From positions 99,448,001 to 99,512,000 of the forward strand of contig CM097886.1 of NCBI GenBank assembly GCA_044892525.1: 64,000 nucleotides of DNA, read 5' to 3'. The position numbers were made by a program, and so were the translations under genes. Each line of letters opens with the position of its first letter. Position 1 is the stretch's first letter. The DNA is from Schmidtea polychroa. Its lineage: Eukaryota. Below, in pieces: positions 22,874 to 64,000 of this stretch. The notes under the pieces are model-generated. The model saw only the letters and a program-made list of their open reading frames with translations, searched no databases and was not told the origin of the DNA.

Positions 22874-22921
22874 ACATGGCAATGATTTAATTATAAGATA
22901 ACGCCAATCAAACATTTTTTT

Positions 22922-22960
22922 CACGATTAATTTCGACAGTTTTCCTGTCATCATCAGGTG
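22922..22960 (-). ncRNA. Inverted copy of the minimal hammerhead motif
   Basis: Exact reverse complement of 23926-23964. Confidence 0.6.
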
Positions 22961-23211
22961 GGATATAATACTCATTAAATAAAGGATTTTAAACAAATTT
23001 AATTATATATAAAAATTTTTTATTTTATAAAAATATTATTTTTTAAAAACTTTAACATTTAAAATTTAATTTAATAATTTAAAAATTTTAAATTTTTTTA
23101 TCAATTATTTAATTTAACACAACAATCAATACATACAATACACAAAAGCTTATTTAAAAACACTCAACACACAAGTATTTACAGCATTCTGCACATTAAT
23201 TTTCGGATTCA

Positions 23212-23736: not shown

Positions 23737-23925
23737 GCTTTTGTGTATTGTATGTATTGATTGTTGTGTTAAATTAAATAATTGATAAAAAAATTTAAAA
23801 TTTTTAAATTATTAAATTAAATTTTAAATGTTAAAGTTTTTAAAAAATAATATTTTTATAAAATAAAAAATTTTTATATATAATTAAATTTGTTTAAAAT
23901 TCTTTATTTAATGAGTATTATATCC

Positions 23926-23964
23926 CACCTGATGATGACAGGAAAACTGTCGAAATTAATCGTG
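23926..23964 (+). ncRNA. Minimal type I hammerhead ribozyme motif (Penelope pseudo-LTR)
   Basis: CAC-CTGATGA-T-GACAG(GAAAA)CTGTC-GAAA-TTAA-TC-GTG: catalytic core, 5-bp stem II, palindromic stem III (ATTAAT), AUC cleavage triplet and 3-bp stem I. Confidence 0.65.
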
Positions 23965-23970
23965 AAAAAA

Positions 23971-24098
23971 NNNNNNNNNNNNNNNNNNNNNNNNNNNNNN
24001 NNNNNNNNNNNNNNNNNNNNNNNNNNNNNNNNNNNNNNNNNNNNNNNNNNNNNNNNNNNNNNNNNNNNNNNNNNNNNNNNNNNNNNNNNNNNNNNNNN
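23971..24098. other. Assembly gap (N run)
   Basis: Run of N bases. Confidence 1.
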
Positions 24099-25644: not shown

Positions 25645-26010
25645 ATGTCTCAATCCAGCGTTAGCAACGACGAGGGTACTGACCAGCAGACGGTCACCCG
25701 GCTCCGGACCCGGTACATCTGGTACCATATACATCGGTGGGGTCAGGGGCGGGACCTGGATTGTGCAGAACGAGTAATCCGGACGGGCCCCGAAGTAGAT
25801 GCCCCGGCATGGGTGAAGGTGGAACCGGAGAATAACCGGTTGCAGGAGGCCCGAGATCAAGCGGCCTGGAATGTGGAAGCCGCTCAGATGCGACTCAGGA
25901 AGATCGAGTTGCAAATCCGGGCAGAAAGAGAAGGAGTGCCCGTGGAAGAGCTAAAAGAGGCCGAGGCTTCCCCACGGAAAAGAGGGAGACCCCGCAAATG
26001 CCAGTCGTGA
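25645..26010 (+). CDS. LTR-encoded 121-aa AT-hook protein (copy A)
   Basis: C-terminal PRKRGRPRK and a VKxE motif. It has the same length as 45983-46348 and 81/121 identical residues by hand count. Confidence 0.75.
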   Translation: MSQSSVSNDEGTDQQTVTRLRTRYIWYHIHRWGQGRDLDCAERVIRTGPEVDAPAWVKVEPENNRLQEARDQAAWNVEAAQMRLRKIELQIRAEREGVPVEELKEAEASPRKRGRPRKCQS

Positions 26011-26367
26011 TTGCAAGCTGACATATGACTTACTCTAACAATTTTCATTTATTGTGGGTAGCGTACTTGATAATCGAACTTGACTAATGTTTATTGTTAA
26101 ATAATAAGCTTTTATTCATTGGATATGTCTTAATTAATGATTAGCGTTTGTTGTTGAATAATAAACTTCTATTCCTTGAGTGGGTCTTAATTAACAATTG
26201 AAATAGGCTAAGGTATTATCGTATGTAGCGTTTCCCTTTTAATCGCGGTAGAGATAGCAAGTACAACAGCATCTCAGTGGCAAAATACCAGCACCGATTA
26301 ATCAATCTACCATTTGTTACTCCAATTTTTTTGTTGTATAAAATAAATAAAATTCTTTACATTTTAG

Positions 26368-26837
26368 TGTATAAGTTAATGGAGAATCTTCGGAAGGATC
26401 GGCAGCAGGCCCAACAACGTGCTGACGAACTCTGGGTCCGGGTGGACAAATTGAAAGTAAAATGTCGGGAGTTCGAGGGGACCTGGTTTAGTCCCGAAGC
26501 CATGAAGAAGAAAATGGCTCAGATCCTCCAGATGCAAACACAGGCCGCCCAAGACCAAATGGAGATCCGCGCCCTGAAGCTACAGGTGCGGGCGCTCGAA
26601 ACTGAGAAAAATGAGCAGTTGGTACAAGGGGCCATAGCAAGACAAATACGGCCACTGGCTGCGGACCTCGCAACTATATATCCCCCATCCGCTGAAAATA
26701 AGCCCAAAAGGAAACGGCTTGGCCGAACTATTCGGGAAAAATTGAAGAAAGCTAGGCTGGCCGAATACGAGCGGCAAGCAAATTCGTCACCAGCAACCAC
26801 GACGGAATTGGCCAGTCTTACCAATAAGTCTGTTTGA
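26368..26837 (+). CDS. LTR-encoded coiled-coil/basic protein (copy A); probably a terminal exon, first ATG at 26379
   Basis: Homologous to 46559-47028 (TWFSPE.MKKK, QMEIRALKLQ, KPKRKRLGR.IREKLKK). A TAG|TG acceptor is conserved at the same place in both copies. Confidence 0.7.
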
Positions 26838-28124
26838 ACTTATATTCGGTTTTAGGTGTCTTGTAGTATATTTATGTATTGTTGTAGTCTTCAAATAATA
26901 TGTTCCTTGGTAAAATAATGCATGTTTTGTAGTGATAAAATAATGACTAGTATAGTTTATGATTGCCTGGAAAATGAGAGTTTGTGCATAAGGTTGGGAA
27001 AACAATTTGGATGAGGGACCTGAGAAATCGGACACATACCTTCTATCGGTAGTCCGTGAACCCATGGAGTACTCGACAATTATAGTGCTTTGATGCGCTC
27101 ACTTTTTGCGAGTACTCAACCCTTGGTACAGTACCAACGTTGATTACTCAACGGGTACCAAGCGGAAAACCAATGTTGCATGTTGGGTTACGCTGGTAAC
27201 AGCACTTAATCATTCGACCACCAGTAACCCACCACATGCTTCGCCGTCGCCAGAAACGGTGGATATGTTAGCCTATTTGAGCAGAAACTGGAAATTTTGC
27301 GGTGGAAAATAATTGTTTATTTTTAATATTATTAGTACAGGCTGACGCAGGTTATGTAATATAACAGCATTTAGCATTCTTATTTTATTCATAAAAGCAT
27401 CGCAATGTTATTTGATTACAGTTTTAACTTTTAAAGTTTTAATATTTCTATTTTCTGTTCTTTTTGAGGCACTATAATCTTCCTCGGTTTACAATATTTA
27501 GTTCATAAAGCAATAACATCATTTTATGATATTATAGTTTTAACTTTTAATTTTCTGTTTTCTGCCTGAGTTTTTTTACTTGTTCAAAAATGATATAATT
27601 TTGAAAGTCAAACACTACGGAGAGAGATAAAGAGGAAGGAGAGGAAAGATAGAGAGATGATTTTTAAAAGTTTACCAAAGAGTTCATGCAAATAAATGTT
27701 TCTCCATGAATTGTGCTCGAAATATTTTAGTTAAGTTGGAGCACCTCTCCTCCACTCAATAAAGTCTGCATAAGTTTCACAACAAACTGCTCAGGGATAA
27801 GTAACTAATAGTTTTGTACGTCTTCACTGCATTTATTCATTCTTTCAATGAATCATCGTCTTCAGTAATAATTAAGCCTATGATCGGGTACCCGGGTGGG
27901 CCTTTTTGTGGTTTTTCACAGCACCACGCACGAATGCTCCCTAAATGTCTAGTTCAGCCCCATTGTAGCCTTTCCCTCCGTATGTGGTGTCTGAAGGATG
28001 GAACCTTAATGAAATGATATCACTAGAATTATTATAAAAAAAGAGGTCAGCAATTTTTATATTGAATCCAATTATAATTATCAACAATAATCACAGATAT
28101 TTCCCACCACCTTTTATAGGAGGC

Positions 28125-42520: not shown

Positions 42521-45500
42521 AAGGTTTAAGACTGCTGGAGGTGGTTGTCATAATACCAATAAATTGTCTGGATTTGGTGAAAATCTAAGTTAATAATTTA
42601 TTGATTATTTAGAAGATTCTTAACTTGGCACTCCTCACTGATGATAACCTTAACTGGACTGGATCTGAGATATCAATAACCCCAATTTTAATGACTTAAA
42701 TGATAATAATGTCCCGATTAATACGCAACAGAATTTTAGGAAATGCAAAAAGTGGTTGGCCCGAGAATCTTTCCGTTTTCTCTCCGCGATTGACCAGTAT
42801 CATTGGGGACCTTAAATGGGCCCTTAGAATTGTCCGTGTCAATCTTAACTATGGATAATGACCCTAATAACGACGACACTACTAGTGATAATCACGCTCC
42901 TAATAATCTCAATGCTAATAATAACACTAGGAGTACTAATGGCAACAATGATTATCATACTGAAATCAAGGGCAATAATTATAATAATTATGCGAAGGAT
43001 AAAAATTTAAGAAAAATTCTAATATTAATCCTTCTGATGATAATACAAATGATAGAACTTGTGATCGTTATAATGGCGGAACTTATTGTTGGGCTAGAAC
43101 TGATTTCTAGACCCAAAATACTAATTGTGACTGAAGCGCGTAGGTACACAGCAAGAAAAAAAGCACCAAGTATAGTTAAATATTAAAACCTACACCAAAT
43201 AAACAATATTAACTAAAGGAGAAAGCAACAAAAACATAAACAAAGAAATTAAACAAAATTATACAAAAGCAAGAAGTGATGCAAAAATCTAACTCAAAAA
43301 TAACCAAATAAACACAGGGTTACAAAAAACAGACTCGAATAACTTAAAAGACGATAAAAACAGTAAAACATTCCAGAAAAACCCAGAACATTCTATAAAA
43401 ATGGCGATGACCATCACAAAAGTTATCTAGAACAACAAAAGTTAAGGAAAATAAATAAATTAGTATTAAAAGTAAAAAATCTCAAAAAGAATTCATAAAA
43501 ACATCAGTTAAAATAAAAATTAAATTAAAAGTAAAATAGAATGTTCTGGAACCGTTCCAAATCCATCATGGACGTAAAATTAATGAAAAATAATTAAAAA
43601 ATAAAAATATAAAAATAAAAACAAAAATTATGGCACAAAAATTGCCATTAAAAATAGCAAAATCGTAAAATAGAAAATTCTGGAATAAAAAGAATTCGAG
43701 TTTGTTTTAATGCATCAATACATACACGTGTACTAAATAGGTATATATACCGACACGTTTCAGTCACAATAATCACTTTTATGCCAAATTTTTGTGACGA
43801 AATTTCCAAAATCGATAGTAAGCATTGATCTTTATTTGTATATTAATTGTTTAATTATATAGATGGTATTTTAAATTTATTTTTTTTTTTTTTGCTTAAA
43901 ATTTTTTGCGATGTATGAGTGATCAACGGCGTACTGGTATTCCTGCGTCGTTGTTCAGTCCTGCATCCAATTTATTAAAATCGTTATTAACAGGACATGC
44001 AGACACGCATTATCATTATTATAGTGATATTTATTATATGATTCCTTTTTGTTCGGGTCAGCCGGAGGTCGAACTACTTCATGGTCCTGCCATGGAGTTA
44101 GGTCGAGGAAACCCTCCGCCTGACTCTTCGTATTTATTTAAGGTCAGCCGTAAATGGTTGACTTAGCACACAACACTAAGGTTTGTGGACGTGGTCACAG
44201 TGGGGCCATGGAAGCAATATTCTTCCCGACTCATTGCGTAATATACAATTAAACTCAACACTTAAAATCCTGAACAATAACTCTACACTAAGGTTCTAAT
44301 TTGAGTAGAGCTCGTACCTAAAATTACACAATTCTACACTCACATTAATGTAGCTAGTTGATTCATAATGGTAATTTCAATTATACTTAGACATATGCCG
44401 AACTAGATTTTGTAGTAAGGATCTTTGATAAAGTAATAGAAATAAGAGAGATATTCGGCATACGTACAGGTATAACTTGATCTAGATATGCTGATTCCGA
44501 GTAAAGATAGACATTTTAAATCTAGTTCCCACTTTAAAATGTTTGTAAATGTGTAGGCTCTTAGTTATAATATTCTTGTTGTTAACTATAAAACTATAAG
44601 TTATAAATAATTACGATAGCTAGGTACAAATCACGTCGATCCTGAAAATGTAAATTGTTAATGGAGAAAGTCTGATCAGAGATAGTAGTAAACAATTTTT
44701 CGTATAAAATCAACTTAGGATTGGTTACAGATAGGCGATAGACGCGCTAGAACCCTGAAGTTTAATCCACAAATAGGACCAGGAAATCTGTAAGTACTGC
44801 GGAAAACAATGTTGATCATAGAAAGGAAGTTGTAAGAAGTATATTCCGTCGACTAAAAATTTCAAATTATAAAGTACGAAAATACGAATTACAAAAGTAT
44901 AAATTTTAGATTATAAACTTATAAATTATAAGTTAAGCAATTATAACTTATAAAATATGAATGTATAAATTTCAAAATATGAAATTATAATTATAAATTA
45001 CAAGATGGTAAATCCCTAAATTGAAAAATTTTAAATTATAAATCGAAAATTATCAAAGTATAAATTATAAAACATAAATTTATAATTCTAAAACATGGGA
45101 TTATAAAATTGTAGTTATCATAATCCTGATCATTTCTCTTGTTATTACTATTAGCAGTATCAACATTATCATTACTATTAGTATTATTATACTTATTCTT
45201 ATTATTATTATATTATTATTATCATTATTATGAATATCATAATTAGTATTATTATTATTATCATCATTATCAGTACCATTATAAAAATTTATTATTATTC
45301 TTGTTATTATTATTATTAGTATTATTATTATTACCATTATTAAAATTTATTATTATTCTAATTAGTATTACTATCATTGCTATTATTAATATTATTATTA
45401 TCATTATTATTATTATTATTAGTATCGTTATTTCATTGTTATTATTATTGGTATTATTACAGTTAACTACAAAAAAATCGATATCCCAATCCGATAACGA

Positions 45501-45982
45501 TCACCTGGAAATTTAGAAATTAGCAAATTAAATAAATTACTTGTATGCAGAGCAAACCACTCATAACGAGCACAACCGAAGGAAAGGCAAGCAGACGAGA
45601 AGCTAAGCTCGTTGTTAATACCTGTCGCCTCAGCGTACCCGAATTTAGTGGCAAAAGATTTAAACCCTGAAATTTTAAATTCGTGATAATATTTACATTA
45701 AAATACAAAAAATATAATTTAAATGTTCACTTAGTGATAAATACAAATTTAGAGAAAAATAGTTAATTAAAACAAGAGGATGGTTGATAAATTTTTTTTT
45801 GGGTTATTAGTAGACAAAATATGAAATTTCATTCTATGGTTCCTAGGATTATAAATGTTGGTCTTAAAATAAAATATTTCTTTTCATTTTCAAATTCTTA
45901 AAGGGAAAAAGGGTCAACAAAATCCTGTGTTTAACGTCGTATTACAATCAGTATAAAGTGGCTTGATTGTTCTTTTGTAGAA

Positions 45983-46348
45983 ATGTCCTATTCTGACAGT
46001 GATAGTAACGAAGCAGCCGACCGGCAGATGCTTACACGACTCCGGACACGGTACATATGGTACCGTATCCATGATTGGAACCGGGGCTTGGACCTCGACA
46101 ACTGGGGCCCAGTAATCAGGAGTGGGCCGGAACCGGACGCCCCAGCGTGGGTAAAAACAGAGCCCACAAACGATTTTTTGCAAGAGGCCCGCGACCGAGC
46201 GGCCATCGAGGTAGAAGCAGCTCAGATGCGACTCAAGAAGATCGAGCTACAAATCCAAGCAGAAAAAGAGGGAAAAACCGTGGAGGACCTAGAAGAGGCC
46301 GAGGCAACCCCGCGGAAGAGGGGAAGGCCTCGCAAGCGATTGAACTGA
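45983..46348 (+). CDS. LTR-encoded 121-aa AT-hook protein (copy B)
   Basis: PRKRGRPRK and VKTE motifs; ortholog of 25645-26010 with many synonymous differences. Confidence 0.75.
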   Translation: MSYSDSDSNEAADRQMLTRLRTRYIWYRIHDWNRGLDLDNWGPVIRSGPEPDAPAWVKTEPTNDFLQEARDRAAIEVEAAQMRLKKIELQIQAEKEGKTVEDLEEAEATPRKRGRPRKRLN

Positions 46349-46558
46349 CTCATCGTCAAAATTTTGTTTTTGCAAATTATCATTCAGTTGTGACTTTATT
46401 AAACTTTGATTTTAGTGATAATTATTTCAGTCCTTTTAATAAATCATCTTGTGTATTGCGTACTTGACATCCGAAACTATGTTTATTTATAATATTGATT
46501 TTATTTTATAATTGAATGAATAGCATGCTGCAAGAATATAATCGTTGAATTTATCTAG

Positions 46559-47028
46559 TGTTCAAACTATTGGAAAATCTGCGAAGAGATAGGGCAGAAG
46601 CTCAAAAACAGTCCGAGGAGCTCCGCATACGCGTAGACAAGCTCAAGGGACGGTGCCGGGAACTAGAAAGCACCTGGTTTAGTCCCGAGGATATGAAAAA
46701 GAAGGTGGCGCAGGTCCTTCAACTGCAGACGCAAGCCGCGCAGGATCAGATGGAGATCCGGGCACTGAAGCTCCAGCTCCGCGTGCTAGAAACCGAGCGA
46801 AATGAACAAGTAGTTCACGGAGCCGCCATAAGCCAAATCCGGCCGTTGACCGTGGAACTAGCAGCAATATACCCCCCGGCCGCGAAAGAGAAACCCAAAA
46901 GAAAGCGGTTAGGCCGAAATATTCGGGAAAAATTGAAGAAAGCTAGACTGGCCGAACACGAGCGACAAGCAAATTTGTCACTGGCAGCTGCGACGGAATT
47001 GACCAGTCCTACCAATAAGCCTGTTTGA
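46559..47028 (+). CDS. LTR-encoded coiled-coil/basic protein (copy B); no in-frame ATG near its start, likely spliced
   Basis: Homolog of 26368-26837 with a TAG|TG acceptor at 46557-58. Confidence 0.7.
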
Positions 47029-47433
47029 ACTTATATTCGGTTTTAGGTGTTTTGTAGTATTTTTATGTATTGTGGTAGTCTTCAAATAATATGTTCCTTG
47101 TTAAAATACTGCACGTTTTGTAGTGATAAAATAAGGACTAGTACAGTTTATGATTGCCTGGGAAATGAGAGTTGTGCATAAGGTTGGGAAAACAATTTTG
47201 ATAAAGGGACCTGAGAAATCGGACACACACCTTCTATCGGTAGTCCGTGAACCCACGGAGTACTCGACAACTATAGTGCTTTGATGCGCTCACTTTTTGC
47301 GAGTACTCAACCCTTGGTACAGTACCAACGTTGATCACTCAACGGGTACCAAGCGGAAAAACAATGTTGTATTTTGGGTTACGCTGGTAACAGCACTCAA
47401 TCATTCAACCACCAGTAACCCACCATACAAATT

Positions 47434-47451
47434 TGGGGGCTCAGCCGGGAT
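47434..47451 (+). promoter_or_regulatory. Primer-binding site, tRNA-Pro type
   Basis: TGGGGGCTCAGCCGGGAT is 16/18 identical to the canonical Pro PBS TGGGGGCTCGTCCGGGAT and lies 8 nt after the LTR end. Confidence 0.85.
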
Positions 47452-48151: not shown

Positions 48152-48634
48152 ATGGAATCAACCGGCTACATTACAAAGAGACTCGAAAAATTCGTAGATT
48201 TAACACACAATTCGTTACAACGGCTAAATCGCAAAGCGGACCAGTTGATAAAAATCCAAGATGAGATGAGCTTGAATCCAAGGCCGCAAGCTGAGGAAAT
48301 ATGCGTAATGATGAAAATAGCGACACCTAATGCAGAATTGACCACTAAAAGAGTTTATCAACTTCAAAATTTACGATTAGACAATGCCAAATTTAACATC
48401 AAATGGCAGGAGATAATGATAAAAATGGAAACGATCGAGGAAGAAATTAAAGAAGCAATCGAACATCAAGTTAAAGATTTTAGAAAATGCTTCATATGCA
48501 GAACCAATGAAATACGAGTAATGACGATTCCATGTGGTCATTTATGCTACTGCGAGAATTGCGCAGAGAAAATTAAACGATGCAACGTATGCGATACGAA
48601 TGTTAGAGAGAAAATTGTAATATACCTCCCATAA
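48152..48634 (+). CDS. 160-aa coiled-coil protein with a C-terminal C3HC4 RING of IAP type (no BIR domain visible)
   Basis: CFICRTNEIRVMTIPCGHLCYCENCAEKIKRCNVC..VREKIVIYLP-stop has RING-HC spacing and an IAP-like hydrophobic tail. Confidence 0.85.
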   Translation: MESTGYITKRLEKFVDLTHNSLQRLNRKADQLIKIQDEMSLNPRPQAEEICVMMKIATPNAELTTKRVYQLQNLRLDNAKFNIKWQEIMIKMETIEEEIKEAIEHQVKDFRKCFICRTNEIRVMTIPCGHLCYCENCAEKIKRCNVCDTNVREKIVIYLP

Positions 48635-50041
48635 GGAGATGTTGTCAAATAAATTTCTTGTGAATGAATATGAAGTGATAAAATTAGTAAATTATATTAA
48701 AAATCCATTATAGCAACCGAAAGGTGTAAAACATACGATGAACATAGACATATAAAGGACACAAAATACGTTAAATAAATAGACAAGCAACACAGCAATT
48801 AGAACTAAAATCAAAGTTGAATGCAGGACTGATCATAGTCGTATGAATGAGCTGATCGCTAAGATCAGTACGATTTTTATTTCCAATTTTCTTTTCTTCC
48901 TGTTTGTTATTTTGGCATAAAGAGATACGATAATGAGGGGATGACAAGTGAATAGTCCTTACGACACTTGCCCGGATGGGGAAATCCTGATCACCCTGAT
49001 GAGAGAATGTAGTAGGATCCATCGCAAATGTTGGGGAGTTTCTGTCCAGTGACTGATCACCACTTGTGGGAAACGAACCAACGCGATTATTATATTTTTT
49101 GTCTGGGAGACTGGGACTAACTAAAAGGGCGAATAAAAATAGAAAAATAAAATAAAAATTGAAAAACGCGCGCTAAACGTTAAAAATTTAATCCGAGAGC
49201 AGCTGCGGATTTGAAGAAACCGTTTTTGGACTTCAAATCAGATGAGAATAATGATTTTTCCCTAGCGAGTGATGAGGCACCCGAGTACAGCGGCTAACCA
49301 CCGGACTGTAGTGTCCAGGAGATTATCGGCCAAGGGACTGATGATGCTGGATCACCCAATACAAAAACCCGGATGCCACACCGAGTATTGGGCGCACTTT
49401 TTTGAGTTGCTAGCGGGACTTGATACAAAAACCCGGAAGGGTAGCGAGCGAGAGAGACCCAGTTACCTACACCGAGTATCAAGGAGCCCAGTGAAACGGT
49501 TGTGAGATGCGAGTCAACCGGTAAAGGACTCGTACTCAACAGGCAACCAAGATTGGACCAGTTGTGAGGCGGGAGACCGAGAGTCAACTGCATACCCAAT
49601 TTCCTTTTAGCTTCACTAGTCGGGAGATCTGGTTCATCACTTTTGAGAATCACGATCAAGGCGATTAGGCATTTCCGTGTTTTTTAAATCCTGATAGATA
49701 GGATGTTTTTTCTTCGTGATTATTGCTAGCAGGGGTCGGTACAAAACCCGGATGCCCACACCGAGTACCGATAGGCCCAGTGAAACGGCGATGAGATTAG
49801 AGTTACCGGTATTAGACTCTTTTCAATAAGCGGCCAAGAATTGAGCCAGTTGTGAGGCCTCAGCAGATTAAGAGTTGGAGTAGGAGGAGCCTCGAATTTT
49901 TGATTAGCCCGAAAGTCAACTGTCAACTCAATTTAATCGCGGTAGGGACGATAGTAGGTGTTAAAACCGAAGGCGTCTGGGGGTTGAAGAAACCTCATTT
50001 AGGGCATTTGAAACCGGTCAGGGACCGAAGACCGCGAATAC

Positions 50042-50483
50042 GGCGTAATGGTGTAAAAGCCCAGGCGTCTAGGAGTCGTAAAAGACTTCAATTTTGATTA
50101 AACCGGCCGGAAGCCGATGCCGACGCGGAGGTCTAACAAACCAAAGCGTTGATGGATAATAGTAGAGTATATGGCGTAATGGTGTAAAAGCCCAGGCGTC
50201 TAGGAGTCGTAAAAGACTTCAATTTTGATTAAACCGGCCGGAAGCCGATGCCGACGCGGAGGTCTAACAAACCAAAGCGTTGATGGGTAATAGTAGAGTA
50301 TATGGCGTAATGGTGTAAAAGCCCAGGCGTCTAGGAGTCGTAAAAGACTTCAATTTTGATTAAACCGGCCGGAAGCCGATGCCGACGCGGAGGTCTAACA
50401 AACCAAAGCGTTGATGGGTAATAGTAGATTATATGGCGTAATGGTGTAAAAGCCCAGGCGTCTAGGAGTCGTAAAAGACTTCA
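50042..50483 (+). repeat. 131-bp tandem repeat, ~3.4 near-identical copies, in the element's leader
   Basis: Units start at 50042, 50173, 50304 and 50435. Confidence 0.95.
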
Positions 50484-51554
50484 TGAGATTAAAATGAGTT
50501 GATTAAACCGGCCAAGGAGCCGATGGTAATTGAGTGAAATGATTTAAATGAAAATAAAGGAGTTGAACAAACCGGCCAGAGAGCCGATGGTAAATAAAGG
50601 TGGATGTAGAGGTCGCGCGAACCAAAGCATCAATGATTAACTATGAAATTGATTAAACTGAAATAGATTAAGTGCGATAAATATGTAATGAGTAGAGGAG
50701 AATTATGATAAAGCGCCGGCGCAAGCGAAAATTAAACCAGTTTTTGGATGGGGAAAAGCGAACGAATAGATAGTAGTTGAATTATTGAATTTTATTTTGA
50801 TATTTATGTGATTAATATTATATTTCTATGATAATTATAAAAGGGATAGATAATTGATACGACTATATAGATAATTGATACGAGTTATAGATAATTTAAA
50901 ATCAACTTAAAATCAAAATGGGGCGAATAGCGAGAAGTGTAGAAAAGCTAGAAAATTTGAAGCGAAGGGACAGTAAAATAAAGGGAAAAGGAAAGTAAAT
51001 GAAGGGTTTAATAAAGAGAATTTATGATATGTACTAGAGGTGTTAATTATTTTAGAATAAAGCAAACAATTCAGAAAGAAATCAAAGAAATCAAGAAAGC
51101 AATAGAAATCAAGAGATATAGAGAAATCAATTAGAAGCGAAGAATCAAGGAAATTAATAAAACCAAATCCAAGAAGAGTTAGAGAATCGTAAAGATTAAA
51201 GCGAGAAAAATACTTAGAAAACATCGAGCTCGATTGACAAAGTAGAAAATTTATCAAAGGATATTAAAAGGAGGAAAAATTGATAGCATAGCTAACCGAA
51301 CGAGACGAAAAAGTAAAGGAAACCTCAGTTTATTGGAAAAGGAAGAGATACAAAAGGCCAAGACCAACAGAAAACTACACAGGAAGCCAGCATCAGTAGA
51401 AACAGTATTTGAATCAGACAGTTTAACAAACGAATTTGAGAACAGCGACGATCTTAAACGAACCGAACTAGATCCGATAAGTGACATTGAATCATCAGAC
51501 GAGGAAGGAAATAGTTCAGAGTCAACCAATATAACAATTTTGTGTCAAGAAATA

Positions 51555-52538
51555 ATGACAGACGGAATTCCAAATGTAACAGGGCTAACGGACCCACCGG
51601 AAACAAGTAATGTGCACGTCAACATTGGAGAATTCAGAGAGAAATTTCGAGGAGAGCCATTCGATGGAAATATAAACCAGCTGGAAACGTTTATAAAGGA
51701 ATTCGAAGTATACATTACGATATGTCACTGGCCAGACATAGTCGTACGAGAACGAATACCCCTATATCTAAAGGGAAGCGCCCAAGATGTATACTTGGAG
51801 GCGAAATGTGATGCAACTAAGTTGAGAACGTGGAAAGAGATCAAGGAATTTTTAATAAAAACATTCGGTACCGAAAAAGAGGGAAATCGGAAAATGTTAG
51901 ACTTTCTGCATCGAAAGCAGAAATATAACGAATCCAACGCACTGTACGCATGCGAATTGAGACGACTAGCACGAGAAGCCTTCGATTCAAATCAACCAGT
52001 TCCGGAAGACAAAATAATAGCCGTATTCGTAGATGGCATGAAACGGGAGGATATACGAGCAACTTTGGGATGCCGAGCACCAGAGACGCTGGAAGAAGCA
52101 CTAAAAATAGCTAACAAATGTGAAACTTACCTAACACCAATACAAGTAGCAGCAATGACAGCAGCCCCAGCAGCTCCAGCAACAACAGCAACAACCACAA
52201 ACAACCAAGTCAATAATGCAAATCCAGTAATGAATCAATTCATCCCAGGATCGCAACAGTTGTTCAAAACTCCACAAACAAGAAACCAAAACAATGGAGG
52301 TAATATTCAAAATTTTACTAATAATTTCAGGAACAACGACATCAACAATCGAACGTGCAACATATGCCAACGACCAGGGCATTGGAGCAATGAATGTTAT
52401 AAAGCAAGGATGTGTCAAAAGTGTGGGAGAAGAGGCCACACGGAAAATGTCTGCAGAGGACCCATGATGTCTATGAGCAGAGGAGGAACCAGAACCTGCT
52501 ACAATTGTAATCAGCCTGGACACATGGCAAGAGAATGC
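51555..52538 (+). other. Polyprotein domain: Gag capsid-like region with three CCHC zinc knuckles (52356-52538)
   Basis: FRGEPFDG..WPD..LYLKGSAQDVY..WKEIKEFL; CNICQRPGHWSNEC, CQKCGRRGHTENVC and CYNCNQPGHMAREC. Confidence 0.9.
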
Positions 52539-55500
52539 ACGATGAGAACCAAACCAAATCAACCAGGATCAAACAATCCAGTTCAGAACACACAAATCAA
52601 CCTCATGCAGGAAATCGAACAATTAAAAGATATGATCCTGCGAATACCGACTAATAACCAACAACAACGAATCAACATGATGCAGAGCACCGAGGAAATC
52701 CGGAACCAACCAAGTAAGCAACAACAAGATCAGCAACGAGTCGAATGGCAAAGATTACAAAACGAGGAAGCCAGAGAAATTCAAGAAAGATGGAAACAAC
52801 GGGAAGCGAATCCCGGAAGAATAAATATGATGAGATTAACAAATAAAGAGGAATCGCACACTGCGGAGCAGTGTGTTAACAACGACGGGAGTGAACCGAT
52901 AATAAACAAGGAGATAAAAACGACAAAAGAAGATGAGATTGATCCACGAACAGAATTGAGCAGTGAAGAGAAAATACAATTGATTAAAGAATTTACCAAA
53001 GAGGAGAAAGAAAGGAGACAAAAGAGAGATGAGAGTAAAGACGAACCAAAAAACAATGAGATAATTACAAAAAATCGAATTCAGAGGGTACTACTACAAA
53101 AAATCGAAGACAGAATCAAAAACGAAAATCCTACATTAACTGAGGAACAAATAAAAGAAAAAGTGAAAGAGCATTGGTTCAGGAAAAATGAGTGGTTTGA
53201 AAAGAAGGAACCACATACCAAAGCTAAAATAAACATGCTGAGACAAATGCGGAGCGATCAGACGGATCAGGAAGATGAGAAAAGTGAGGTGAGTAGCCTG
53301 GGAGGCGAATTATTTCAGTCAAGTGAGGAAAATAACGAACCGAAAACACCTCCAAACAGTGAAACACCTCAAAGTAGTGAGGAGAGTGAAAATGATGACA
53401 TGAAATCAATGATAGAAAAAGATGAAGAAGAGATATTCGAGGAAATTCTCGACACAGTAACAGAAATAGAGCGAAATGAGAGCTACATCAACGAGTTAAC
53501 ATACAGAAAATGCTTAAAACTTATAACTCAAGTATACCAGTGTGAAGGAGGTATAATAACGGCAGCATGGAAAGATTTAGCAACAAAATATAAAGAGAAA
53601 CTAAAGGAAGCAGGCCCAGATCAATATCAAGTAAGTATTCAACACCCCGAGATTCAGATACAGACTATTGAATTAAAAGGAACAAATACCGATGAACTGT
53701 ACAACTGGGTACAGGAAAAAATGGGAACGAGCCATAAAAATAAACAATTATATGTCGATGGTTACAAAGTTAAAATGGGCATACATTTGGTAGATGCGAT
53801 GATATGGCCAAACGAAACTAACATCTTAACCTTAGAGAAAACCAGAGATGACGACTCGGTAGCAGAAATGTTCAAGAAAATCCAACAAGTGTTTAACAAT
53901 GAAGTGGAACCAGAATTGGAAAAGATCGAACGAAAAATAATGAAAGAAAATCAAATAATCTTAGTCAAACAAGCTATCGATCAGACAAGGAAATACATTA
54001 ATAGACTGAGAGAAAGATGGCCACAACTAATGAAACAATTCGTTAAAGACGTACGAGACACGGAAATTATGAGATTCGAAGACAAACGAGCGACAGAATT
54101 GATATCTAAATACGGAGAATACGAGAGAACCAAATGCGAGCATGAAACGATGAAAATAAAGGTGAAGTTGCCAAATGAAGAGAAACAAATAATAGAAGTT
54201 AATCCCGATTGCCAAGTTGACGAGTTAGTGCAAATCATAGATCAAGAGATCATCCAAAAAGCTCGAGAAAATAGTGAGGATGGAATGATCGAAGATGTGA
54301 TAATAATGTACAACCGGCACATGCTAGAAAGAGGAGACCGAACTGTAATTTACGAACTAGGAATCTGGGAAGATGGAGCCGTCATCAATATAATCGCGAT
54401 GGATGAACCATCTGGTGGGCACAAAAACGCCACGAAAACCGAGCAACAAATTAAAAGATTCCAATGGGGAATGAGGGCAAAGATGGATCGAATAATAGAT
54501 ATTTATAACCATTGGCTAAAGGATGATAAACTAAAACTAGCAGCCTTCAATGACGAAGATTGCAAACTGATACCATGGAAAAAAGTGTGGATCGAAAGTG
54601 AAGCTCGATGGGATTGGGAGCAGCAAAAGTTGGAACCAAATTGGATAGATAATATACCCGAAGAGATCGCAGCAGTATGGGTAAGAGAGAAACCGATCGA
54701 TACTTACCAGGATATATTACCACAAGAATTCCAAAATGAATTACCATCAGGAGAAGATGAGGAGATACGAGAACCGGTAAAGTTAGCACCATTCACGTGG
54801 AAAATTGAGAATTGGATGGAAAAGATAAAATCAGCAAAGGAAGAGAAAATCACACGATTAGTAAGTCCACCGTTCTACTCAGGATTAGGTGAGTACAAGA
54901 TGAAATTGCGAATATACCCGAACGGAGACGGGATAGGTAAAGGAAGTTATGTGTCGGCATTCTTCGCCATCTGCAAAGGAAATTATGACGACAAGGTACC
55001 ATGGCCGTTTAGCAGAAAAGTGACGATAGCAATCGAACCATTGAAAGATAGCCTTAACATGCATAAAGAAACATTGAAACCAGATCCAAGGAGCGCCTGC
55101 TATCAACGACCAACAACATCAGAAAATATCGCTTCTGGGACACCTAAATTAATACGTCTAAGTTACATTGAGAATGAGCAGTCAAAATTTGTGAAAAACA
55201 ATGCTATCCAGATCAGAGTAGAAGTTGAAACAGAACAAGAAATGAACCAACGACTGAACATACCAGAAAATCAACCGAGAATCTGTATGATGAGGAGAAG
55301 AGTGTCTGATTCAGGACATCTACCAATAGACGCAGATGCAGATGAGGAGGAAGCAGCAACATTGTTGGAAGCACAAAAATGTAAGGAGTTGATGGAGATA
55401 TTACAAAACGGGGCGAAAAATCGTCGACGAGCGGTGGTAGAACTAGCAAAATGGATAGCCGAATCATGCAAAAGGATTCAAAATCTACGAAAGATCGTTA

Positions 55501-58500
55501 AAGCGATTGAAGAATATAGACGGGTATACGTATGGTACCCTGAACAATTTGGTGAAATCATCCGGAAATGGAAACAACAAGAGTGGGCCGAAAACTCACC
55601 TGAGAAATATCAATTAAAAATATTCATGCCAGATTTTGAACCAATGGAAAAGGAATTCTATACGACAGCTAAAGTCAGAGAAGTTAAAAAGAGAATACCT
55701 TATGAACTCCCATTCCACTTACAACACGAGGGACGATCATTAGACGACGATATTGAGATCGGTGTGACACCACTCCAAGGAGAAATTGTGAACAGATTAA
55801 CGGTGAGTAAAATTGCAGGTAGAGAGCTAAGGAGAAGAGAGATAAAGCAAAAATCATCCACCCAACAACCAGGAAGTTTGGACACACCAGAAGTTCCAAA
55901 TGCGGTTAGTGAAGTGACGATCGAAACAACGGGAGAAGACGAAATACTGAATGAATTACAAGAGATAGTAGAAGCAGGCGAGATTATGAGAGCATCGCAA
56001 TCAGGAGATCTATTTATCGACGAAGGTGAACCGACAACTGATGATTTAGATGGATTTGTATGCGCGCAGAGACAACCAGTGGAAACGACGGAAGCCGAGA
56101 CGGATTTAGATAACGTGGAAAGAGGTGCCAATAAAGATGTAACCACAACCGATGAATGGAGCAACTGGAGAGTAGATCCAGGAGCGACCACGTCAAAAGA
56201 TACAACTTACAATCCGCCAAAACGGAAAGAAACCGGAACAGCTATGGATCGACGAACAAGAGGAAGACCAAAAACAGATAAAGCAGAGATCGAACCAAAA
56301 TCCAAAGTTCAGGCGCAAATGGAGCAGGTAAAAACTAAAATGGATAAACTAAGTGCATTAGTAAAACAAGTGAAAGTGAAGACAAGCGTCCGAGAACAAG
56401 GGACACGATGGATAAATGACCTATTAGCCAACGTGTTAGCATTAGCAAATCCAGAAGTGAAAAGAGTCATGAGGAAGGATAATATTCCGACCGAAGCCAA
56501 ACAATTATGGGCAGTATTGAAACCGATAATAATGAAAATCATGGATAATAAAATTCGATTAACGTTAAAAGATCCCGTGGAACTCAGATTAATTGTGGAA
56601 CATCTATTAAGCAGATCAGAGGACCAAAATCGATTTTTAGTGGGATTAGCATATTTAGTATATAACGTTATCGGTCAATATAAAAAACGAATGCCAAAAT
56701 ATAACGCAACGGGTTACGAATTCACAGTAACAGAAATAATTAAACGATCAATAGAACCATATATACTTGAACAAGGGGGATGGAGAAGCTTCATCGAATC
56801 AACTGGGAAGAAAGATCAAACGGAAATGATGCAAGCAAAGTTACGCGATTTGCTAACTGAATTCGAAGGAACAATCAATATAAACGACCCAAGAGCAAGT
56901 CGAAAGGGAATGAATGCCATAATAACCACGATATTGATATGGATGATGTGTATCAAAGGAACGGAGTCATTTGCAGTATACGACTGCGACAACATAAAAA
57001 TCCATGAGAAATATTCATTAAAGGATACGGAAGACTGTAAAGCGGCAAACCCAAGAAAATTACAAACAGTCATGGCATCAGTCTCGTACAACGTATATCA
57101 AGAAGCAGATTTCATCAAAACTATGGTCCAAGAGTGTACGGTAACCAGAAAGATATTCGCACATCACTGCGGTTCATCCTCACACTCAACAATCATAGAA
57201 CCAGGATTGGAATCGACAGTAATATTACTATCAAGAGAGGAATGCGAGGAAGGGTTCCGATCAGGGAGAATCCACTTAAGGCAAGGGATTGAAATCGCCG
57301 CAGAACCAGGAAAAATAAAAACGACTCGCGTATATACGGCGGGCAGAATCACTAAAGGAGACGGAACATGTGAGACAGGAACATACACCTTGAACGGACA
57401 ACTGGTTAGTGGAGTGGTCGTAATAGAAAGTTACGAAGCTAAATTGGAAAAGTATCAAGGCTACTTTGACCCTGACACGCAAGCAATGAAGAAATACCCA
57501 AGCTGTCTCGCATCAGATCGATCATGTTCAACCGGAATGTCAACTCTGGTATACCACGCAGATCAGAAAGTATGTCGACTAATGTTACTCAAGACAGCAG
57601 TATTCGAAGAAATCCAAGGGAAAGTGTACAGTGAACCAAAAGGAGAAGCAGAGAGACGAGCGATGGAAGAATTGAGAGCAAGGAAAGGATTCAGGGAAGA
57701 CGTAATAACATCGAAATTGGAATCGGAAGTAACACCCACAGCGATAATCTCCAAAGACGATGGAATAGGAATGAGGTTCATAAAGAACAAAATGGTGAGT
57801 AAATGCGATGAGATGGTGATCAGCACCAATTATAAAGGGATCTACTTGTCGCGGAGAACCCTAGCAAATGCAGTCGGAAGACTAAGCGAAAAGGATGTCA
57901 AATTATATTTATACGCTAATAATAAGATGGATTTCTTATATCACAGAGGATTAACATCTACGGAAAAAGTCTACCATGATCTGTTAAGAAACGATTGCCT
58001 GCTCAACAAAGAAATATTGAGAACAAAATTAGCAATGGCGATTACAAATCCAGATAACGCAATTCCACTACTACCATTACAGGAAGGATATTTCGGACGA
58101 ATCGTGGGCAAAGTGATGTACACCTACCAATGCAAAAAGATAATGGCAAGATTGCCGGAAAACCCTACAATACCAAGGGATAAGTGTGCAAACGAACTCG
58201 AAATTATTCACGAAGGTAAACCCAGGTTTGTGCAAGCAGTCACTAGGATAATGAACCCGGTAGGGTTTCAGCCAAATCTGTTCAATTGCAGTAATGCATA
58301 TGGACCAATGTATGAAAAAGAAGATGGACAATGGGTTCAATTTCCAAGTAAAACAATCGTAGTGACACCCAAGAAATTTGGATTGACGGAACTAACAACA
58401 GAATTAGAGTTCAAGCCGATAGACGTATCACAGAGTGGATTATATACACCAAAAGATCTTGAATCAGCAAGGGCCCACATGTTATTCCCAGCACACAGAC

Positions 58501-61500
58501 AAGCGATCCTATCAAATATAGTGACTATTTCTGGAGGAAATAATTATGGGGAGAGCCCAAATTACGAGCTATTATTATCACCAAGTCACTATCAACAAGC
58601 AACAGCAAACATGATGAAGGCTATGTGGGGTCGATTTTTGGTATTTGGCCAAATGATGGCAGGAATACTCGGAATTATTCTGATAATACAAATAGTCAGA
58701 GTAATACTAACCCAGATGCTAGCATGTTTTGACATCTATAAGCGCGAGAGAAAAGTAAATTGGAAACTTGCAATTGGATTCTTACCGTTCTTAGCGAAAA
58801 CAATGGTGTTGCATGGACACTCAAAGGATATTCATCGAATAAAAAGATTGTTGAAAATACTAACGCAAATGAAAGGGACAGACGAAGAAGTCGGACGTAA
58901 GTTCAAAGTGATAATGAGATTAGAAGCAGAAAGAACTCAAGAGAAAGCAAAAAGAACCGGGAAGTGGAAAAAGTGGATGAACCTCAGACGAGACGATGAT
59001 AGTGACAACGACAATGATGATTTCAACGACGATGATAATAACCAAGGAGGAGCAATGTTGATAAATAAAAATACAGCCACTTGGGAAAACGAAAAAATGA
59101 AACCATGGGGATCACCGTATTCACAGACCCCATATTTACAAGCACCAACTAATGGACCAATGCGACGACCAGGAACAATGAGAGAACGGATAAGAATGGG
59201 AACCGGAAGATTACCCATACCGAACATTTATCCAACAGCTTATGAACCAAATTGGGCAGCAATGGATCCAACGATGATCAAACAGGCTAAAAGTGTAGAA
59301 CAAGAAGTGGAGACACGAACGATTGCGGTATTGCAGACACCAGCCGGACCATCATTAACCATCACGGTCGAAGTAAACGGAATAGAAATGGATGCAATGA
59401 TCGATACCGGAGCAAATATTTCGGCAATAAATATGAATATGCTACCAGGCAGACTATGGCCATGCATTGAAGAGACAACCATGGATGTAATAACATGCAG
59501 CAAACAATCCATAGCGGTGGTAGGAAGAGTATGGTCAACGATTGAATATAAAGGGGTTAAAGTTACAACGTACCTCGCAGTCATTAGACAGCTAAGCGTA
59601 TCATGTATAATTGGAACAGATGTAATGCCGGAATTATTGAAAGAAATTGTGATTGATTTGAGTTCCATGAAATTAAAAGATAAAACTGGACAGATATGCA
59701 CAATGAGAACAGAAGTGAGATGCTCCGAAAAAATGATAATACCAGCACGTACCCAGACAATATGTTATGTCAAGGTCGATAACGAAGCCAAAGGAGATAT
59801 GATATTTGAACCAAGTCAAAAATTCGAGAAGAGAAGGGAGCTGCCATTGGCAAGAGAAATTGTCAGTATAAATGAGGATAACGAGATACCCATCAATATC
59901 ACCAATTTTGATGAGGAAGATAAAGTAATCTACGAAAACGAGAGACTTGGAAAACTCACACCAATGATGAACATTGAGCTACCGGAGATAAAAAGCGAGG
60001 GAGCAGACGAAAAAGAATTATGGACCATCGATAGCGAACTCCTAAATAAAGACGAAAAGGAACAACTCAGACAACTACTGATTGAGTTTAAAGATATTTT
60101 TGCGGCTTCAGATTTGGAATTGGGTACTAGCGATGTAACTCAACACATTATACCATTAACAGATGAGACACCCATAACGTTAAGACCATATCGATTGGCT
60201 GAAGCACAAAAAACGGTAGCAGAGGAAGAAGTACAAAAGATGTTAGATGCTGGGGTAATAGAACCTAGTTGCTCACCATGGCAATTCCCAGTGGTAATGG
60301 TCAAAAAGAAAGATGGCACACAGAGATTTTGTATTGACTATCGGAGGTTGAACGCAGTAACAAAAAGAGATACATATCCACTGCCAGACATAAACGAAAT
60401 GTTACAGATGTTGCATGGAGCAGCATACTTTACATCTTTAGATCTAAAGAGTGGATACTGGCAAATTAAAGTTAAAGAGGAAGATAGAGAAAAGACAGCC
60501 TTTACCATCGGAAAAGATTTATATCAGTTTAAAAAGATGCCATTTGGATTAACAAACGCACCTGCTTCGTTTCAGAGATGTATGAACTTTGTGACACACG
60601 GGATCAAACAATGTATGGTGTATATCGATGATCTGTTAATTTATTCAGGTACTTTCGAGCAACACTTAATCGACATCAGAAACGTATTCATAAGACTGAA
60701 ACAATGGAAGCTGAAATTGAAACCGTCAAAATGCGACTGGGCAAAGGAGAGAGTCACATTTTTAGGACACATTGTGTCGGCAAAAGGAAAAGAACCAGAT
60801 CCGAGAAACATTGAGAAAATAAAGAATTGTCCGATACCAAAAACCGTGACTCAGGTACAAGAATTTCTGGGATTATGCGGATACTACCGCAAGTTTATCA
60901 AAAATTATGCAACTATCGCAAAACCAATTCAAGAACTAACAAAAAAAGATACTCCATTTCTGTGGGAAAGGGAACAGCAAATAGCTTTCGAATCGCTAAG
61001 AGATAAACTAATAGCCTCGCCTATCTTAATCCACCCAGATTTCAAAAAGCCTTTTTTATTAGCAACTGATGCAAGTGGATACGCATCAGGAGCTGTGCTA
61101 GGACAATGGGATGAGGAGAAAAGAGAAAGAGTCATCGGATATTATAGCAAGACGTTCAAAAAACACGAGAAGAATTACTCGGTCACAGAAAGAGAGGCCT
61201 TAGCAATAATTCAGGCGATAAAACATTTCAAATATTTATTGTGGGGACACGAGATAATTATTACTACGGACCATCAACCTCTAGTTTGGTTGGGCCAACA
61301 TAAAGAGGCATCTAGTCGATTGATGAGATGGGCAATGCAGTTACAAGAATATTCTCCATACATCAAATTCAAGTCAGGAAAAGCAAACGCAAATGCAGAC
61401 TGCATGTCGAGATTTGTATTTGAAGAACTCATGGATCATGACGTCAGACGAATATGCCTGATAATCGCGGAAGATATCGATTTTACCAATCTAAAGAACG

Positions 61501-64000
61501 AACAAAAGGAAGACAATGAATTAAAACTAATAATTGAGTTCCTGGAAAAAAACGATATGAAAATATTCAACAACGATGATCGACTAAAAGAACACATGGA
61601 GAAAAATCGTCACAGATATACGATCGAGAAAGGATGGCTATTGGTAATGGATGGCGACAAACGATTGATGTGTCTACCAGAAAGTAGACGGAAAGAAATT
61701 ATGATTCAATACCACGATGGTAAATTGGGCGGACATATGTCAGCCAAGAAAACAGAAGCAAGGCTCAAACAGAAATATTACTGGCCAAATATGAGCGATG
61801 ACGTGAAAGAATGGATAAAGAACTGCCTGATATGCGCAACCAGAAAAACAACGGGCAGTAAACTAAAGCCACCATTGAAACCAATGCCGATACCGCCAGA
61901 ACCGATGACAATGATTGCAATGGATGTAGTTGGACCACTACCAGAGACTAACAGTGGAAATGTGTATATATTGGTAATAACTGATTATCTGACTAAGTTC
62001 CCTGAAGCATTTGCGATGCCAGACCAGAAAGCACGAACGGTTGCAAGGATATTAGTGGAAGAGATCTGCTGCAGATATGGAACACCAAAACAAATCTTAA
62101 CTGACCAAGGAACTAATTTCATGAGCGAGATAATAAATGAAGTGACAAATTATTTTAGAATTGCCAAATTGAGAACCTCACCATACCACCCGCAAACGAA
62201 TGGTCAGACAGAAAGATTTAACGGCATACTAATAGACATGATGTCCAATTACGTGAGTAAACATCAAAAGGACTGGGATGAATATATTAAGTTGTGTCTA
62301 ATGGCTTATCGAATGTCAATACACTCAGCAACGAAAATGAGTCCGTTTAAACTCATGTATGGAAGGGAATGCAACATGCCGATGGATCTCGAATACCAAC
62401 CGCCAATCTCACAATATATGGAGATAGATGATTATGTGACAAAGTTCAAGGAGAGAATGCAAGAAATATGGAAAACCGCAGGGATGAACATCCGATTCAA
62501 CCAAGAGAGTTATAAGGAATTACATGATAAAAAGAAGAACGTGCAAAACCATCAATTTAAAATCGGAGATTGGGTTATTATAGAAACACCCGAATTAATC
62601 CCAGGAACAGCAAAGAAATTACAACGTAATGGCAGAGGGCCATATGAAATCATCTATGTAAACGAGAACAACGCTAGAGTGAAGTTGGTTAACAATCCAC
62701 TAATTAGACCTATTTATGTGAATACATGTCGATGCAAAGCAGTAGCGAAAACTGCCACTAAAGACCCAGAAACAAGAAGGATAATCACGAGATCACAAAC
62801 AAATGCCACAACGGAACCAGAAGTAAGCGGTAGATTAACTAGATCACAGACAAGACGGATATTCATGTTGAGAGGAGAAACAAGCAGCAGCGCCCATAAA
62901 GGAACTGAAGCAGAAAGCGAAGCGGACGCAATGGCAAGGAGCCAAGCAACATGGAATATGACAGTAAAAATAGCACGAGAAATTGTACCAGAATGGGCCG
63001 ATATAACCAATAAATACCAAGTGTTGGGCAAACTAATGTTAGTAGCAGAAAGATATGCGAAAGGACGAAGATATGCCGAAGGATTACAAATACCGACTCA
63101 AATATATGAACTAATCCGGAGATTACCAATCATGTTCCTAACAAGTGATTTGAGTAATAACTGGCCAATCCATCATGCAGTGAAAGCAGGACAAGAAAAA
63201 CGAGCTTTAGAGATTATACGAATAATGGAAAACTGCAAACAATCAACAAACGTCAAAAACAGTAAAGGAAAAACTCCACTGATGAAAGCCATAGCAATAG
63301 GCGCGTCAAGAGATGTACTCAGAGAATTATTAAGAACGGGATCCACGCTGAAAGAAAAAGACAACAAACAACGAACCGTATTACGTTATGCCGTCAGGTC
63401 AAAAAGACCTAGTATAGTGAACTTTATCACAGGAAATGCAACAACCGAAGAAGCCGAGGTATTGGGACAGAGCATTGAACCAATTCTGGAAGCCATCAGA
63501 GGAAACTTAGACAGAACCGCAGCAATATTAATCAAATGGAAACAAAACGAATTAAGAGCGGAAGTAATTGATATAAATCAATTCCAAAACAACGAAAATA
63601 TCGTACTAAGAAGCGCCATATACTCAAGACCACCAATGCCAAAAACCATTAAAGCAATATTACAGAGAAATAGAACAGAATTGACAGGTAATTGGTGGAA
63701 ATGCACAAAAACACATGCGATGAAAAAGCAACTAGAAATACTAGTGTGGGAATGGCACCGGAAACAACGGAAATATCAAGGAACCAAAGAAGAACGAGAA
63801 AGTATCCACAACGACAAAAAAGAGATAATTAAAAAATACGAGGAGATGATCAAAGCAGCAAATGTCGAGGACGACATTTTCAGGAAAACCCCGGGTGAGA
63901 GGAATGACGACGACGACGACGACGAAAGGATGGGGGATAACGATAACAACCCAGAGGAAAACGACAGAGAACAGAATCCGGAAGGCGGAGAAACAACGAG
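51555..64000 (+). CDS. Gag-cargo-Env-Pol polyprotein, at least 4148 aa, 3'-incomplete (frame open from 51246; first ATG 51555)
   Basis: Line-by-line hand translation found no stop from 51246 to 64000. Confidence 0.93.
   Translation, partial: [4148 protein letters not shown]
53625..53840 (+). other. Polyprotein domain: ubiquitin-like domain 1
   Basis: [46 protein letters not shown]..ILTL follows the ubiquitin beta-grasp pattern. Confidence 0.55.
54150..54419 (+). other. Polyprotein domain: ubiquitin-like domain 2, ending in Gly-Gly
   Basis: [61 protein letters not shown]..SGG aligns with ubiquitin MQIFVK..EVEPSDTIENVK..LIFAGKQLEDGRTL..LRGG. Confidence 0.7.
54792..55229 (+). other. Polyprotein domain: TRAF-type MATH domain
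   Basis: [69 protein letters not shown]..IRVEV closely follows the TRAF2/3/5 TRAF-C sequence. Confidence 0.92.
55608..55805 (+). other. Polyprotein domain: ubiquitin-like domain 3
   Basis: [46 protein letters not shown]..LTV. Confidence 0.6.
56400..56798 (+). other. Polyprotein domain: Bcl-2-like helical domain
   Basis: BH2-like [16 protein letters not shown] (compare Bcl-xL LEPWIQENGGWDTFVE) and a degenerate BH1-like [11 protein letters not shown]. Confidence 0.6.
56910..58730 (+). other. Polyprotein domain: chuvirus-like envelope glycoprotein (signal 56910-56969, ectodomain, TM ~58623-58730)
   Basis: The Cys/motif pattern YDC..[65 protein letters not shown].LGI matches my recollection of the chuviral G family. 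Confidence 0.8.
59330..59660 (+). other. Polyprotein domain: retroviral-type aspartic protease
   Basis: [10 protein letters not shown] (DTG at 59403-59411) and CIIGTD. Confidence 0.92.
60140..61412 (+). other. Polyprotein domains: reverse transcriptase and RNase H
   Basis: RPYR, [32 protein letters not shown], YIDD (60621-60632), FLGH; RNase H TDAS, E(REALA), TDH and ADCMSR. Confidence 0.97.
61713..62720 (+). other. Polyprotein domain: integrase (HHCC, D-D35-E, GPY)
   Basis: H..GH..CLIC; D at 61923, D at 62103 and E at 62211 (35-residue spacing); GPY at 62637-62645. Confidence 0.97.
63162..63660 (+). other. Polyprotein domain: ankyrin repeats (3-5) C-terminal to integrase
   Basis: [26 protein letters not shown] and [14 protein letters not shown], plus further degenerate repeats. 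Confidence 0.8.

Follow-up and report, generated by a model that had tools for sequence, protein, structure and literature searches.

The 64,000-nucleotide stretch of Schmidtea polychroa DNA analysed here (hereafter the window; contig CM097886.1, positions 99,448,001 to 99,512,000) very probably holds a giant Ty3/Gypsy-like long terminal repeat (LTR) retroelement of the Burro/GYPSM1 type, from a dugesiid planarian, whose polyprotein carries an intact, host-derived and retained TRAF-C (MATH) domain. The window covers the 5' two-thirds of this element, while its 3' part, where the 3' LTR would be expected, lies beyond the window end. The preliminary description of this DNA knew of no typical LTR element with such a domain, and in this it was mistaken: both the first description of such giant Gypsy-like elements from Schmidtea mediterranea, as GYPSM1 (Jurka 2007), and the later work on them as Burro elements (Grohme et al. 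2018) noted MATH_TRAF_C among their domains, as reviewed by Arkhipova and Yushenova (2019; PMC6431247). A TRAF-C domain in Burro elements has thus been known since 2007 and was discussed again in 2018-2019, and we do not present it as a new discovery. What we add is the likely source of the domain in a triclad TRAF2-like gene and the residue signature that marks it, the state of its peptide-binding hot spots, the absence of any predicted coil abutting it, and an accessory open reading frame (ORF) with an IAP-type RING finger.

The TRAF-C domain and the element that carries it

On the forward strand, positions 54792..55226 encode an intact TRAF-C domain of the TRAF1/2/3/5 kind. The preliminary description had placed a TRAF-C type MATH domain, inside a retroelement polyprotein, at 54792-55229 (+), and translation of that interval reproduces the motifs it had quoted. 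Residues 1183-1327 of the polyprotein (54792-55226) match the Pfam families MATH_2 (E 1.1e-28 with the whole frame, 4.3e-30 with a 267-residue piece) and TRAF-mep_MATH (E 4.4e-26 and 1.7e-27, respectively), with scores of 100.6 and 92.1 bits against curated gathering cut-offs of 32 and 27.4 bits; the MATH match inside the giant stop-free frame is therefore far beyond chance. When the solved structures in the PDB were searched with the domain (phmmer), TRAF3 (E 8e-32), TRAF5 (3e-28), TRAF2 (5e-27) and TRAF1 (1e-26) came first, followed at lower scores by TRAF4 (3e-17) and TRAF6 (5e-16). The best 28 sequence matches were all TRAFs and meprin was the sole non-TRAF match, at 2e-3; neither SPOP nor USP7 was among the matches listed. 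This ranking rules out the identity of the domain with a non-TRAF MATH protein (meprin, SPOP or USP7), an alternative that the preliminary description had itself raised.

The predicted structure agrees. An AlphaFold2 model, computed from an input alignment of 50 relatives, has a predicted local distance difference test (pLDDT) score above 95 across the MATH domain, and in Foldseek comparisons it superposes on the TRAF-C domains of TRAF2 and TRAF3 with a root-mean-square deviation of 0.9-1.1 Å over 146-149 columns; with TRAF4 and TRAF6 the deviation is larger, at 1.7-2.5 Å. The fold is thus predicted to be a beta-sandwich superposable on solved TRAF-C domains, the members of which are defined by an eight-stranded one. 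Sequence search places TRAF3/5/2/1 nearest and structural comparison TRAF2/3, in keeping with the type of domain originally proposed.

The domain is embedded in a giant polyprotein frame (51246..63998, +), which is stop-free over 4,251 codons, has its first ATG at 51555 and runs off the window end; the 12.7 kb inside the window are continuous, with no break in the frame and no N nearby. From 5' to 3', all on the forward strand, this frame encodes a Gag capsid region (Retrotrans_gag/Ty3 capsid-like, 51657..52133), three CCHC zinc knuckles of nucleocapsid type (52356..52538), a weak ubiquitin-like (UBX-like) match (54150..54248; Pfam OTU1_UBXL, E 8e-4, below the gathering score), the MATH domain, an envelope-like fusion glycoprotein lying in frame between gag and pol (Monjiviricetes_fusion, 56910..58742, E 6.9e-67 in two stretches), a retroviral-type aspartyl protease (59361..59636; a weak match, E 1e-4 to 6e-4), reverse transcriptase and RNase H (60300..61352; RVT_1 6e-35, RT_RNaseH 2e-38), an integrase composed of an H2C2 zinc finger and an rve core (61677..62192) and, 3' of the integrase, ankyrin repeats (63168..63431). 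The presence of Gag, protease, reverse transcriptase, RNase H and integrase in the same frame by Pfam bears out the earlier statement that the domain resides inside a retroelement polyprotein.

The 5' boundary of the element could also be recognised. A block of about 4.3 kb with TG...CA ends (43087..47425, +) recurs at 20518..27234 (+), with 80-89% identity across the aligned pieces and with the similarity bounded at the same ends. A few bases beyond the end of the 43087-47425 copy lies a putative primer binding site beginning TGG (47434..47451, +; read from the sequence), and this copy is therefore taken as the 5' LTR of the element, while the 20518-27234 copy has CATG on either side and is therefore taken as a solo member of the same LTR family. 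This solo LTR is broken by extra sequence and by two runs of N. Just upstream of the giant frame, the leader holds a 131-bp tandem repeat (50038..50483, +), present in at least three copies that are 98-99% identical. The base composition of the window shifts at about 46 kb, and no second internal copy of the polyprotein was found by tblastn in positions 1-43086.

Retention, probable host source and putative peptide-binding site

The preliminary description had allowed for a one-off insertion, in which case other copies would be expected to lack the domain. When 1.84 billion representative sequences were scanned exhaustively with HMMER, 3,885 matched, the best single-domain match being an unnamed protein of 882 amino acids (UniParc UPI00060E6093; here P0014). 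This protein is 49% identical to the window polyprotein over 867 amino acids and colinear with it across both MATH junctions, and it holds the domain in the same place. Identity by region is 49.3% in the MATH domain, 50.0% upstream and 52.2% downstream of it. By this comparison, the insertion is not a one-off: the domain stayed in place while identity between the polyproteins fell to about 50%. Copies beyond P0014 were looked for in word-indexed protein searches (with frame region 1150-1350 and with 700- and 260-residue pieces), by looking up P0014 and the RING ORF as exact sequences, and by scanning loci in metagenome and viral contigs with either one protein or an alignment of two sequences as query; none came back.

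P0014 is listed in the databases as a protein annotated with MATH only, and we read it as a fragment of a Burro-like polyprotein; MATH domains of such elements may therefore be among those that transcriptome surveys count as planarian TRAFs. TRAF genes are numerous in planarians, and 121 MATH domains were counted in one planarian survey (PMC6109357). As a separate observation, two segments 5' of the MATH domain, at 54150-54450 (which contains the weak OTU1_UBXL match) and at about 53850-54050 (+), have a ubiquitin-like look, with a beta-beta-alpha-beta pattern seen in a low-confidence model only. One of these segments ends in Gly-Gly in this copy, but not in P0014.

Where the domain came from is indicated by its nearest cellular relatives. 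After P0014, the domains closest in identity include those of Dugesia japonica TRAF-2-like A (45.5% identity) and Dendrocoelum lacteum TRAF-4 (43.7%), followed by molluscan, cnidarian and echinoderm TRAF2/3-like proteins (42-43%). In a distance-based neighbour-joining tree of 119 MATH domains (about 146 columns, 300 bootstrap replicates, sparse taxon naming), the window domain paired with P0014 in 291 of the 300 replicates, and the sister of this pair was D. lacteum TRAF-2 together with a further sequence, P0090 (259/300); D. lacteum TRAF-4, D. japonica TRAF-2-like A and unnamed sequences formed the next layers. The residues at the serine-finger site tell the same story: the window domain has Cys at the site of TRAF2 S455 and Tyr at that of F456, and Cys at the S455 site occurs in only seven of 122 other domains, which are exactly the seven cellular members of the planarian clade. 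Because the nesting in the tree and the independently shared Cys-Tyr residues agree, the sequences give good, if not final, support to the capture of the domain from a triclad TRAF2-like gene, without the RING and the TRAF zinc fingers. The nearest planarian TRAFs that were scanned carry a RING, TRAF zinc fingers or both. A planarian host source, which had been called plausible at the outset, is thus strengthened by both lines of evidence.

To compare the peptide-binding site, residues were mapped, through the TRAF3 alignment from the PDB search, to the receptor-peptide hot spots of TRAF2, which consist of a polar pocket, a serine triad and a hydrophobic pocket (Park 2018, PMC6125299). The equivalents of R393, Y395 and D399, which make up the polar pocket, are retained, as is that of F410. 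The hydrophobic pocket is conservatively altered, with I, L, Y and T replacing L, F, F and C, so that its last residue is a Thr. The serine triad reads S-A-C in the window domain, its middle serine being replaced by Ala, and S-M-I in P0014. A peptide-binding crevice, probably with a specificity of its own, is plausible from this pattern of residues.

A possible role in host TRAF signalling, and its alternatives

Between the 5' LTR and gag, and separate from the TRAF-C domain, lies an accessory ORF of 160 amino acids (48152..48634, +) with a C-terminal IAP-type RING finger, recognised both by Pfam (zf-C3HC4_3, E 3.4e-12) and among the RINGs of the PDB; its best solved relatives are the RINGs of cIAP2, cIAP1 and XIAP (E 6e-10 to 5e-8). 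This ORF bears on the earlier claim that the captured domain lacks the RING and the zinc fingers, the form in which TRAFs act as dominant negatives in mammalian experiments. For the polyprotein the claim holds, as Pfam gave no zf-TRAF or RING match in the 4,251-residue frame; for the element as a whole it needs correction, since an IAP-type RING is encoded in the upstream ORF. The dominant-negative reading of a RING-less TRAF-C would here be an analogy only: no abutting coil is predicted and the serine triad is altered.

By analogy, a decoy or adaptor role of the domain in host TRAF signalling is plausible. We infer the processing, the binding partners and the effect on signalling as follows, and put the mechanism forward tentatively, as the likeliest of the readings considered, though giving it as a whole somewhat less than an even chance. 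The TRAF-C domain would be translated within the polyprotein and might be cut out by the element's protease. In this RING-less form it would bind, through its polar pocket, the short motifs by which host receptors or adaptors engage TRAFs and, once bound, would either compete with host TRAFs or tether the element's proteins to receptor and adaptor complexes. Acting alongside the IAP-type RING ORF, the ubiquitin-like segment and the ankyrin repeats, it would dampen immune or cell-death signalling that depends on TRAFs in the cells expressing the element. The avidity needed may come from the multimerisation of Gag and not from a TRAF-N stalk. Planarian TRAFs have been tied to innate immunity (PMC7958881), and it has been suggested that the accessory domains of Burro elements meddle with host apoptosis and ubiquitination (PMC6431247). 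A bolder version of the proposal, which we regard as rather doubtful, is that the TRAF-C, derived from a triclad-specific TRAF2-like clade with an altered serine finger (Ser-x-Cys-Tyr), is a working decoy or adaptor and makes up, with the IAP-type RING, a TRAF-IAP-like unit that would reprogram immune or cell-death signalling in those planarian tissues that express the element, with thousands of copies incidentally inflating the reported 'TRAF expansion' of planarians.

Several points weigh against this picture of the element and of its mode of action. Classical RING-less TRAF constructs depend on trimer avidity. Ahead of the domain the model shows nothing but short helices and a linker, some 50 residues long, of low confidence, the AlphaFold2 model has no long helix or coiled coil running into the MATH domain, and the region further upstream (residues 861-1095) gave an unusable model (pLDDT 46), which was kept out of the fold search; with no abutting coil predicted, trimer avidity is therefore unsupported. 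Given the altered serine triad and the several changed residues of the hydrophobic pocket, the canonical Px(Q/E)E mode of binding may not hold. The support for the mechanism comes from sequence and predicted structure. Membership in the Burro family rests on the architecture, compared with the published description, and not on sequence identity. Finally, the BCL2-like, SUMO-like, dUTPase-like and BIR motifs of the published Burro elements were found here neither by Pfam (E up to 1) nor by phmmer against the PDB, although the published calls derive partly from HHpred, which is more sensitive than the Pfam and PDB searches used here, and the ORF extends past the window end.

The domain could instead be a passenger, captured once, devoid of any binding function and carried in frame because a stop codon or a frameshift would kill the downstream pol. 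We consider this quite unlikely. It would fit with a MATH domain that is no more similar to its counterpart in P0014 (49.3%) than the unannotated flanks are (50-52%), with a serine triad and part of a hydrophobic pocket that are altered, and differently so in the window and in P0014, and with a flexible position, the domain being found in a separate upstream ORF in a Dugesia tigrina relative (PMC6431247). However, the constraint of the frame alone leaves unexplained both the survival of all the fold-defining positions and of the R/Y/D pocket at about 50% divergence and the very confident prediction of the fold, and the same separate ORF, in another genus, means that the domain is kept beyond the reach of that constraint (PMC6431247).

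A different possibility is that the TRAF-C domain serves the element's own proteins as a recruitment module, either by bringing the assembly of Gag and Env to receptor complexes or membranes, or as the substrate-binding half of a split E3 ligase, a TRAF-IAP-like unit encoded by the element, whose other half is the product of the IAP-type RING ORF. MATH domains generally serve as substrate adaptors of ubiquitin ligases, the IAP-type RING has its own ORF, a ubiquitin-like segment lies near the MATH domain, and this domain is embedded between Gag and Env instead of being terminal, all of which speak for such a module. Nevertheless, any contact between the MATH domain and the RING ORF product is hypothetical, and mammalian cIAPs bind the TRAF-N coiled coil, which is not predicted here, and not TRAF-C; we hold this explanation to be unlikely. 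Much less credible still is an artefact, in which mis-assembly or a recent insertion placed a host TRAF exon next to retroelement sequence. There are assembly gaps elsewhere in the window, and planarian TRAF genes are many (PMC6109357), but the frame is continuous around the domain, with no N nearby, the independent P0014 is colinear across both junctions at about 50% identity, and the same arrangement is described in the literature (PMC6431247). With a continuous frame and the colinearity of P0014, we rejected this reading, which is almost certainly wrong.

The rest of the window and related systems

Other parts of the window hold features of different kinds. A 654-codon open stretch at 38867-40828 (-) has the features of a hAT transposase (Spin-doc zinc finger, DUF4371 and hAT dimerisation) and represents a different mobile element, and a 241-codon open stretch at 35717-36439 (+) weakly matches an ISXO2/IS1595-like DDE transposase (E 1e-5, below the curated cut-off). 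Likely host exons are found on the reverse strand for PHAF1 (phagosome assembly factor 1; 28515-29405, E 9e-41) and for a proteasome subunit (11996-12619, E 9e-35). At 455-1102 (+) there is a tandem array, in two blocks, with a unit of about 18 bp that contains TGACCTTGAAAAA. The A/T richness of the window fits a genome reported to be more than 70% A/T (PMC11410931).

Burro elements are unusual in being retrovirus-like, larger than 30 kb, with gag, env and pol joined in a single frame, and in carrying host-derived regulators of cell death and ubiquitination, and the TRAF-C domain is among the clearest of their host captures. If functional, it would make the element a rare case, in an invertebrate rich in somatic stem cells, of a retroelement that manipulates TRAF signalling; this idea is already in the literature. 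BURRO1 is reported to be highly abundant, active, enriched in the gut and under the control of SMEDWI-2 (PMC8532177).

In the parts that could be compared, the architecture of the window element agrees point by point with that of the published Burro/GYPSM1 elements. ORF1 of GYPSM1/Burro has 4,873 amino acids and comprises Gag with three CCHC motifs, MATH_TRAF_C, BCL2-like, ubiquitin/SUMO-like, BIR and ankyrin domains; the Burro env is related to the fusion glycoproteins of mononegaviruses and lies in frame between gag and pol; and the published figure draws tandem repeats (PMC6431247). Such an element is expected to have a long LTR on each side of an internal region of about 25 kb; in the window, the 5' LTR and the solo copy were found, and the 3' LTR would lie beyond the window end. 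Shared with the window element are (i) a single giant ORF with three CCHC knuckles; (ii) MATH_TRAF_C after Gag; (iii) a mononegavirus-like env between gag and pol; (iv) the order of protease, reverse transcriptase, RNase H and integrase, with ankyrin repeats after the integrase; and (v) long LTRs, tandem repeats in the leader and accessory ORFs. The Burro-like element of Dugesia (Girardia) tigrina belongs to the same family and also has MATH_TRAF_C, but there the domain is reported from a separate upstream accessory ORF, whereas in the window it is part of ORF1 and the upstream ORF encodes the IAP-type RING (PMC6431247).

The cellular TRAF1/2/3/5 proteins, and especially those named TRAF-2 or TRAF-4 in triclads, are 37-46% identical to the window domain over its whole length, with the same predicted fold (about 1 Å) and the R/Y/D pocket; the triclad TRAF-2/TRAF-4-named proteins also have in common with it the Cys-Tyr that replaces Ser-Phe at the serine-finger site. 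In contrast to the cellular TRAFs, the window domain comes without a RING, TRAF zinc fingers or a predicted abutting coil, and is embedded in a polyprotein. A virus-borne TRAF domain is also known from megalocytiviruses, whose TRAF proteins came out as the top structural matches within the viral library; one of them, ISKNV ORF111L, is reported to bind host TRADD and to alter caspase-8 apoptosis (PMC3352826). The megalocytivirus TRAF differs in being a free-standing protein that passed from a vertebrate host to a DNA virus, and it is only about 22% identical to the window domain, which therefore points to an independent capture.

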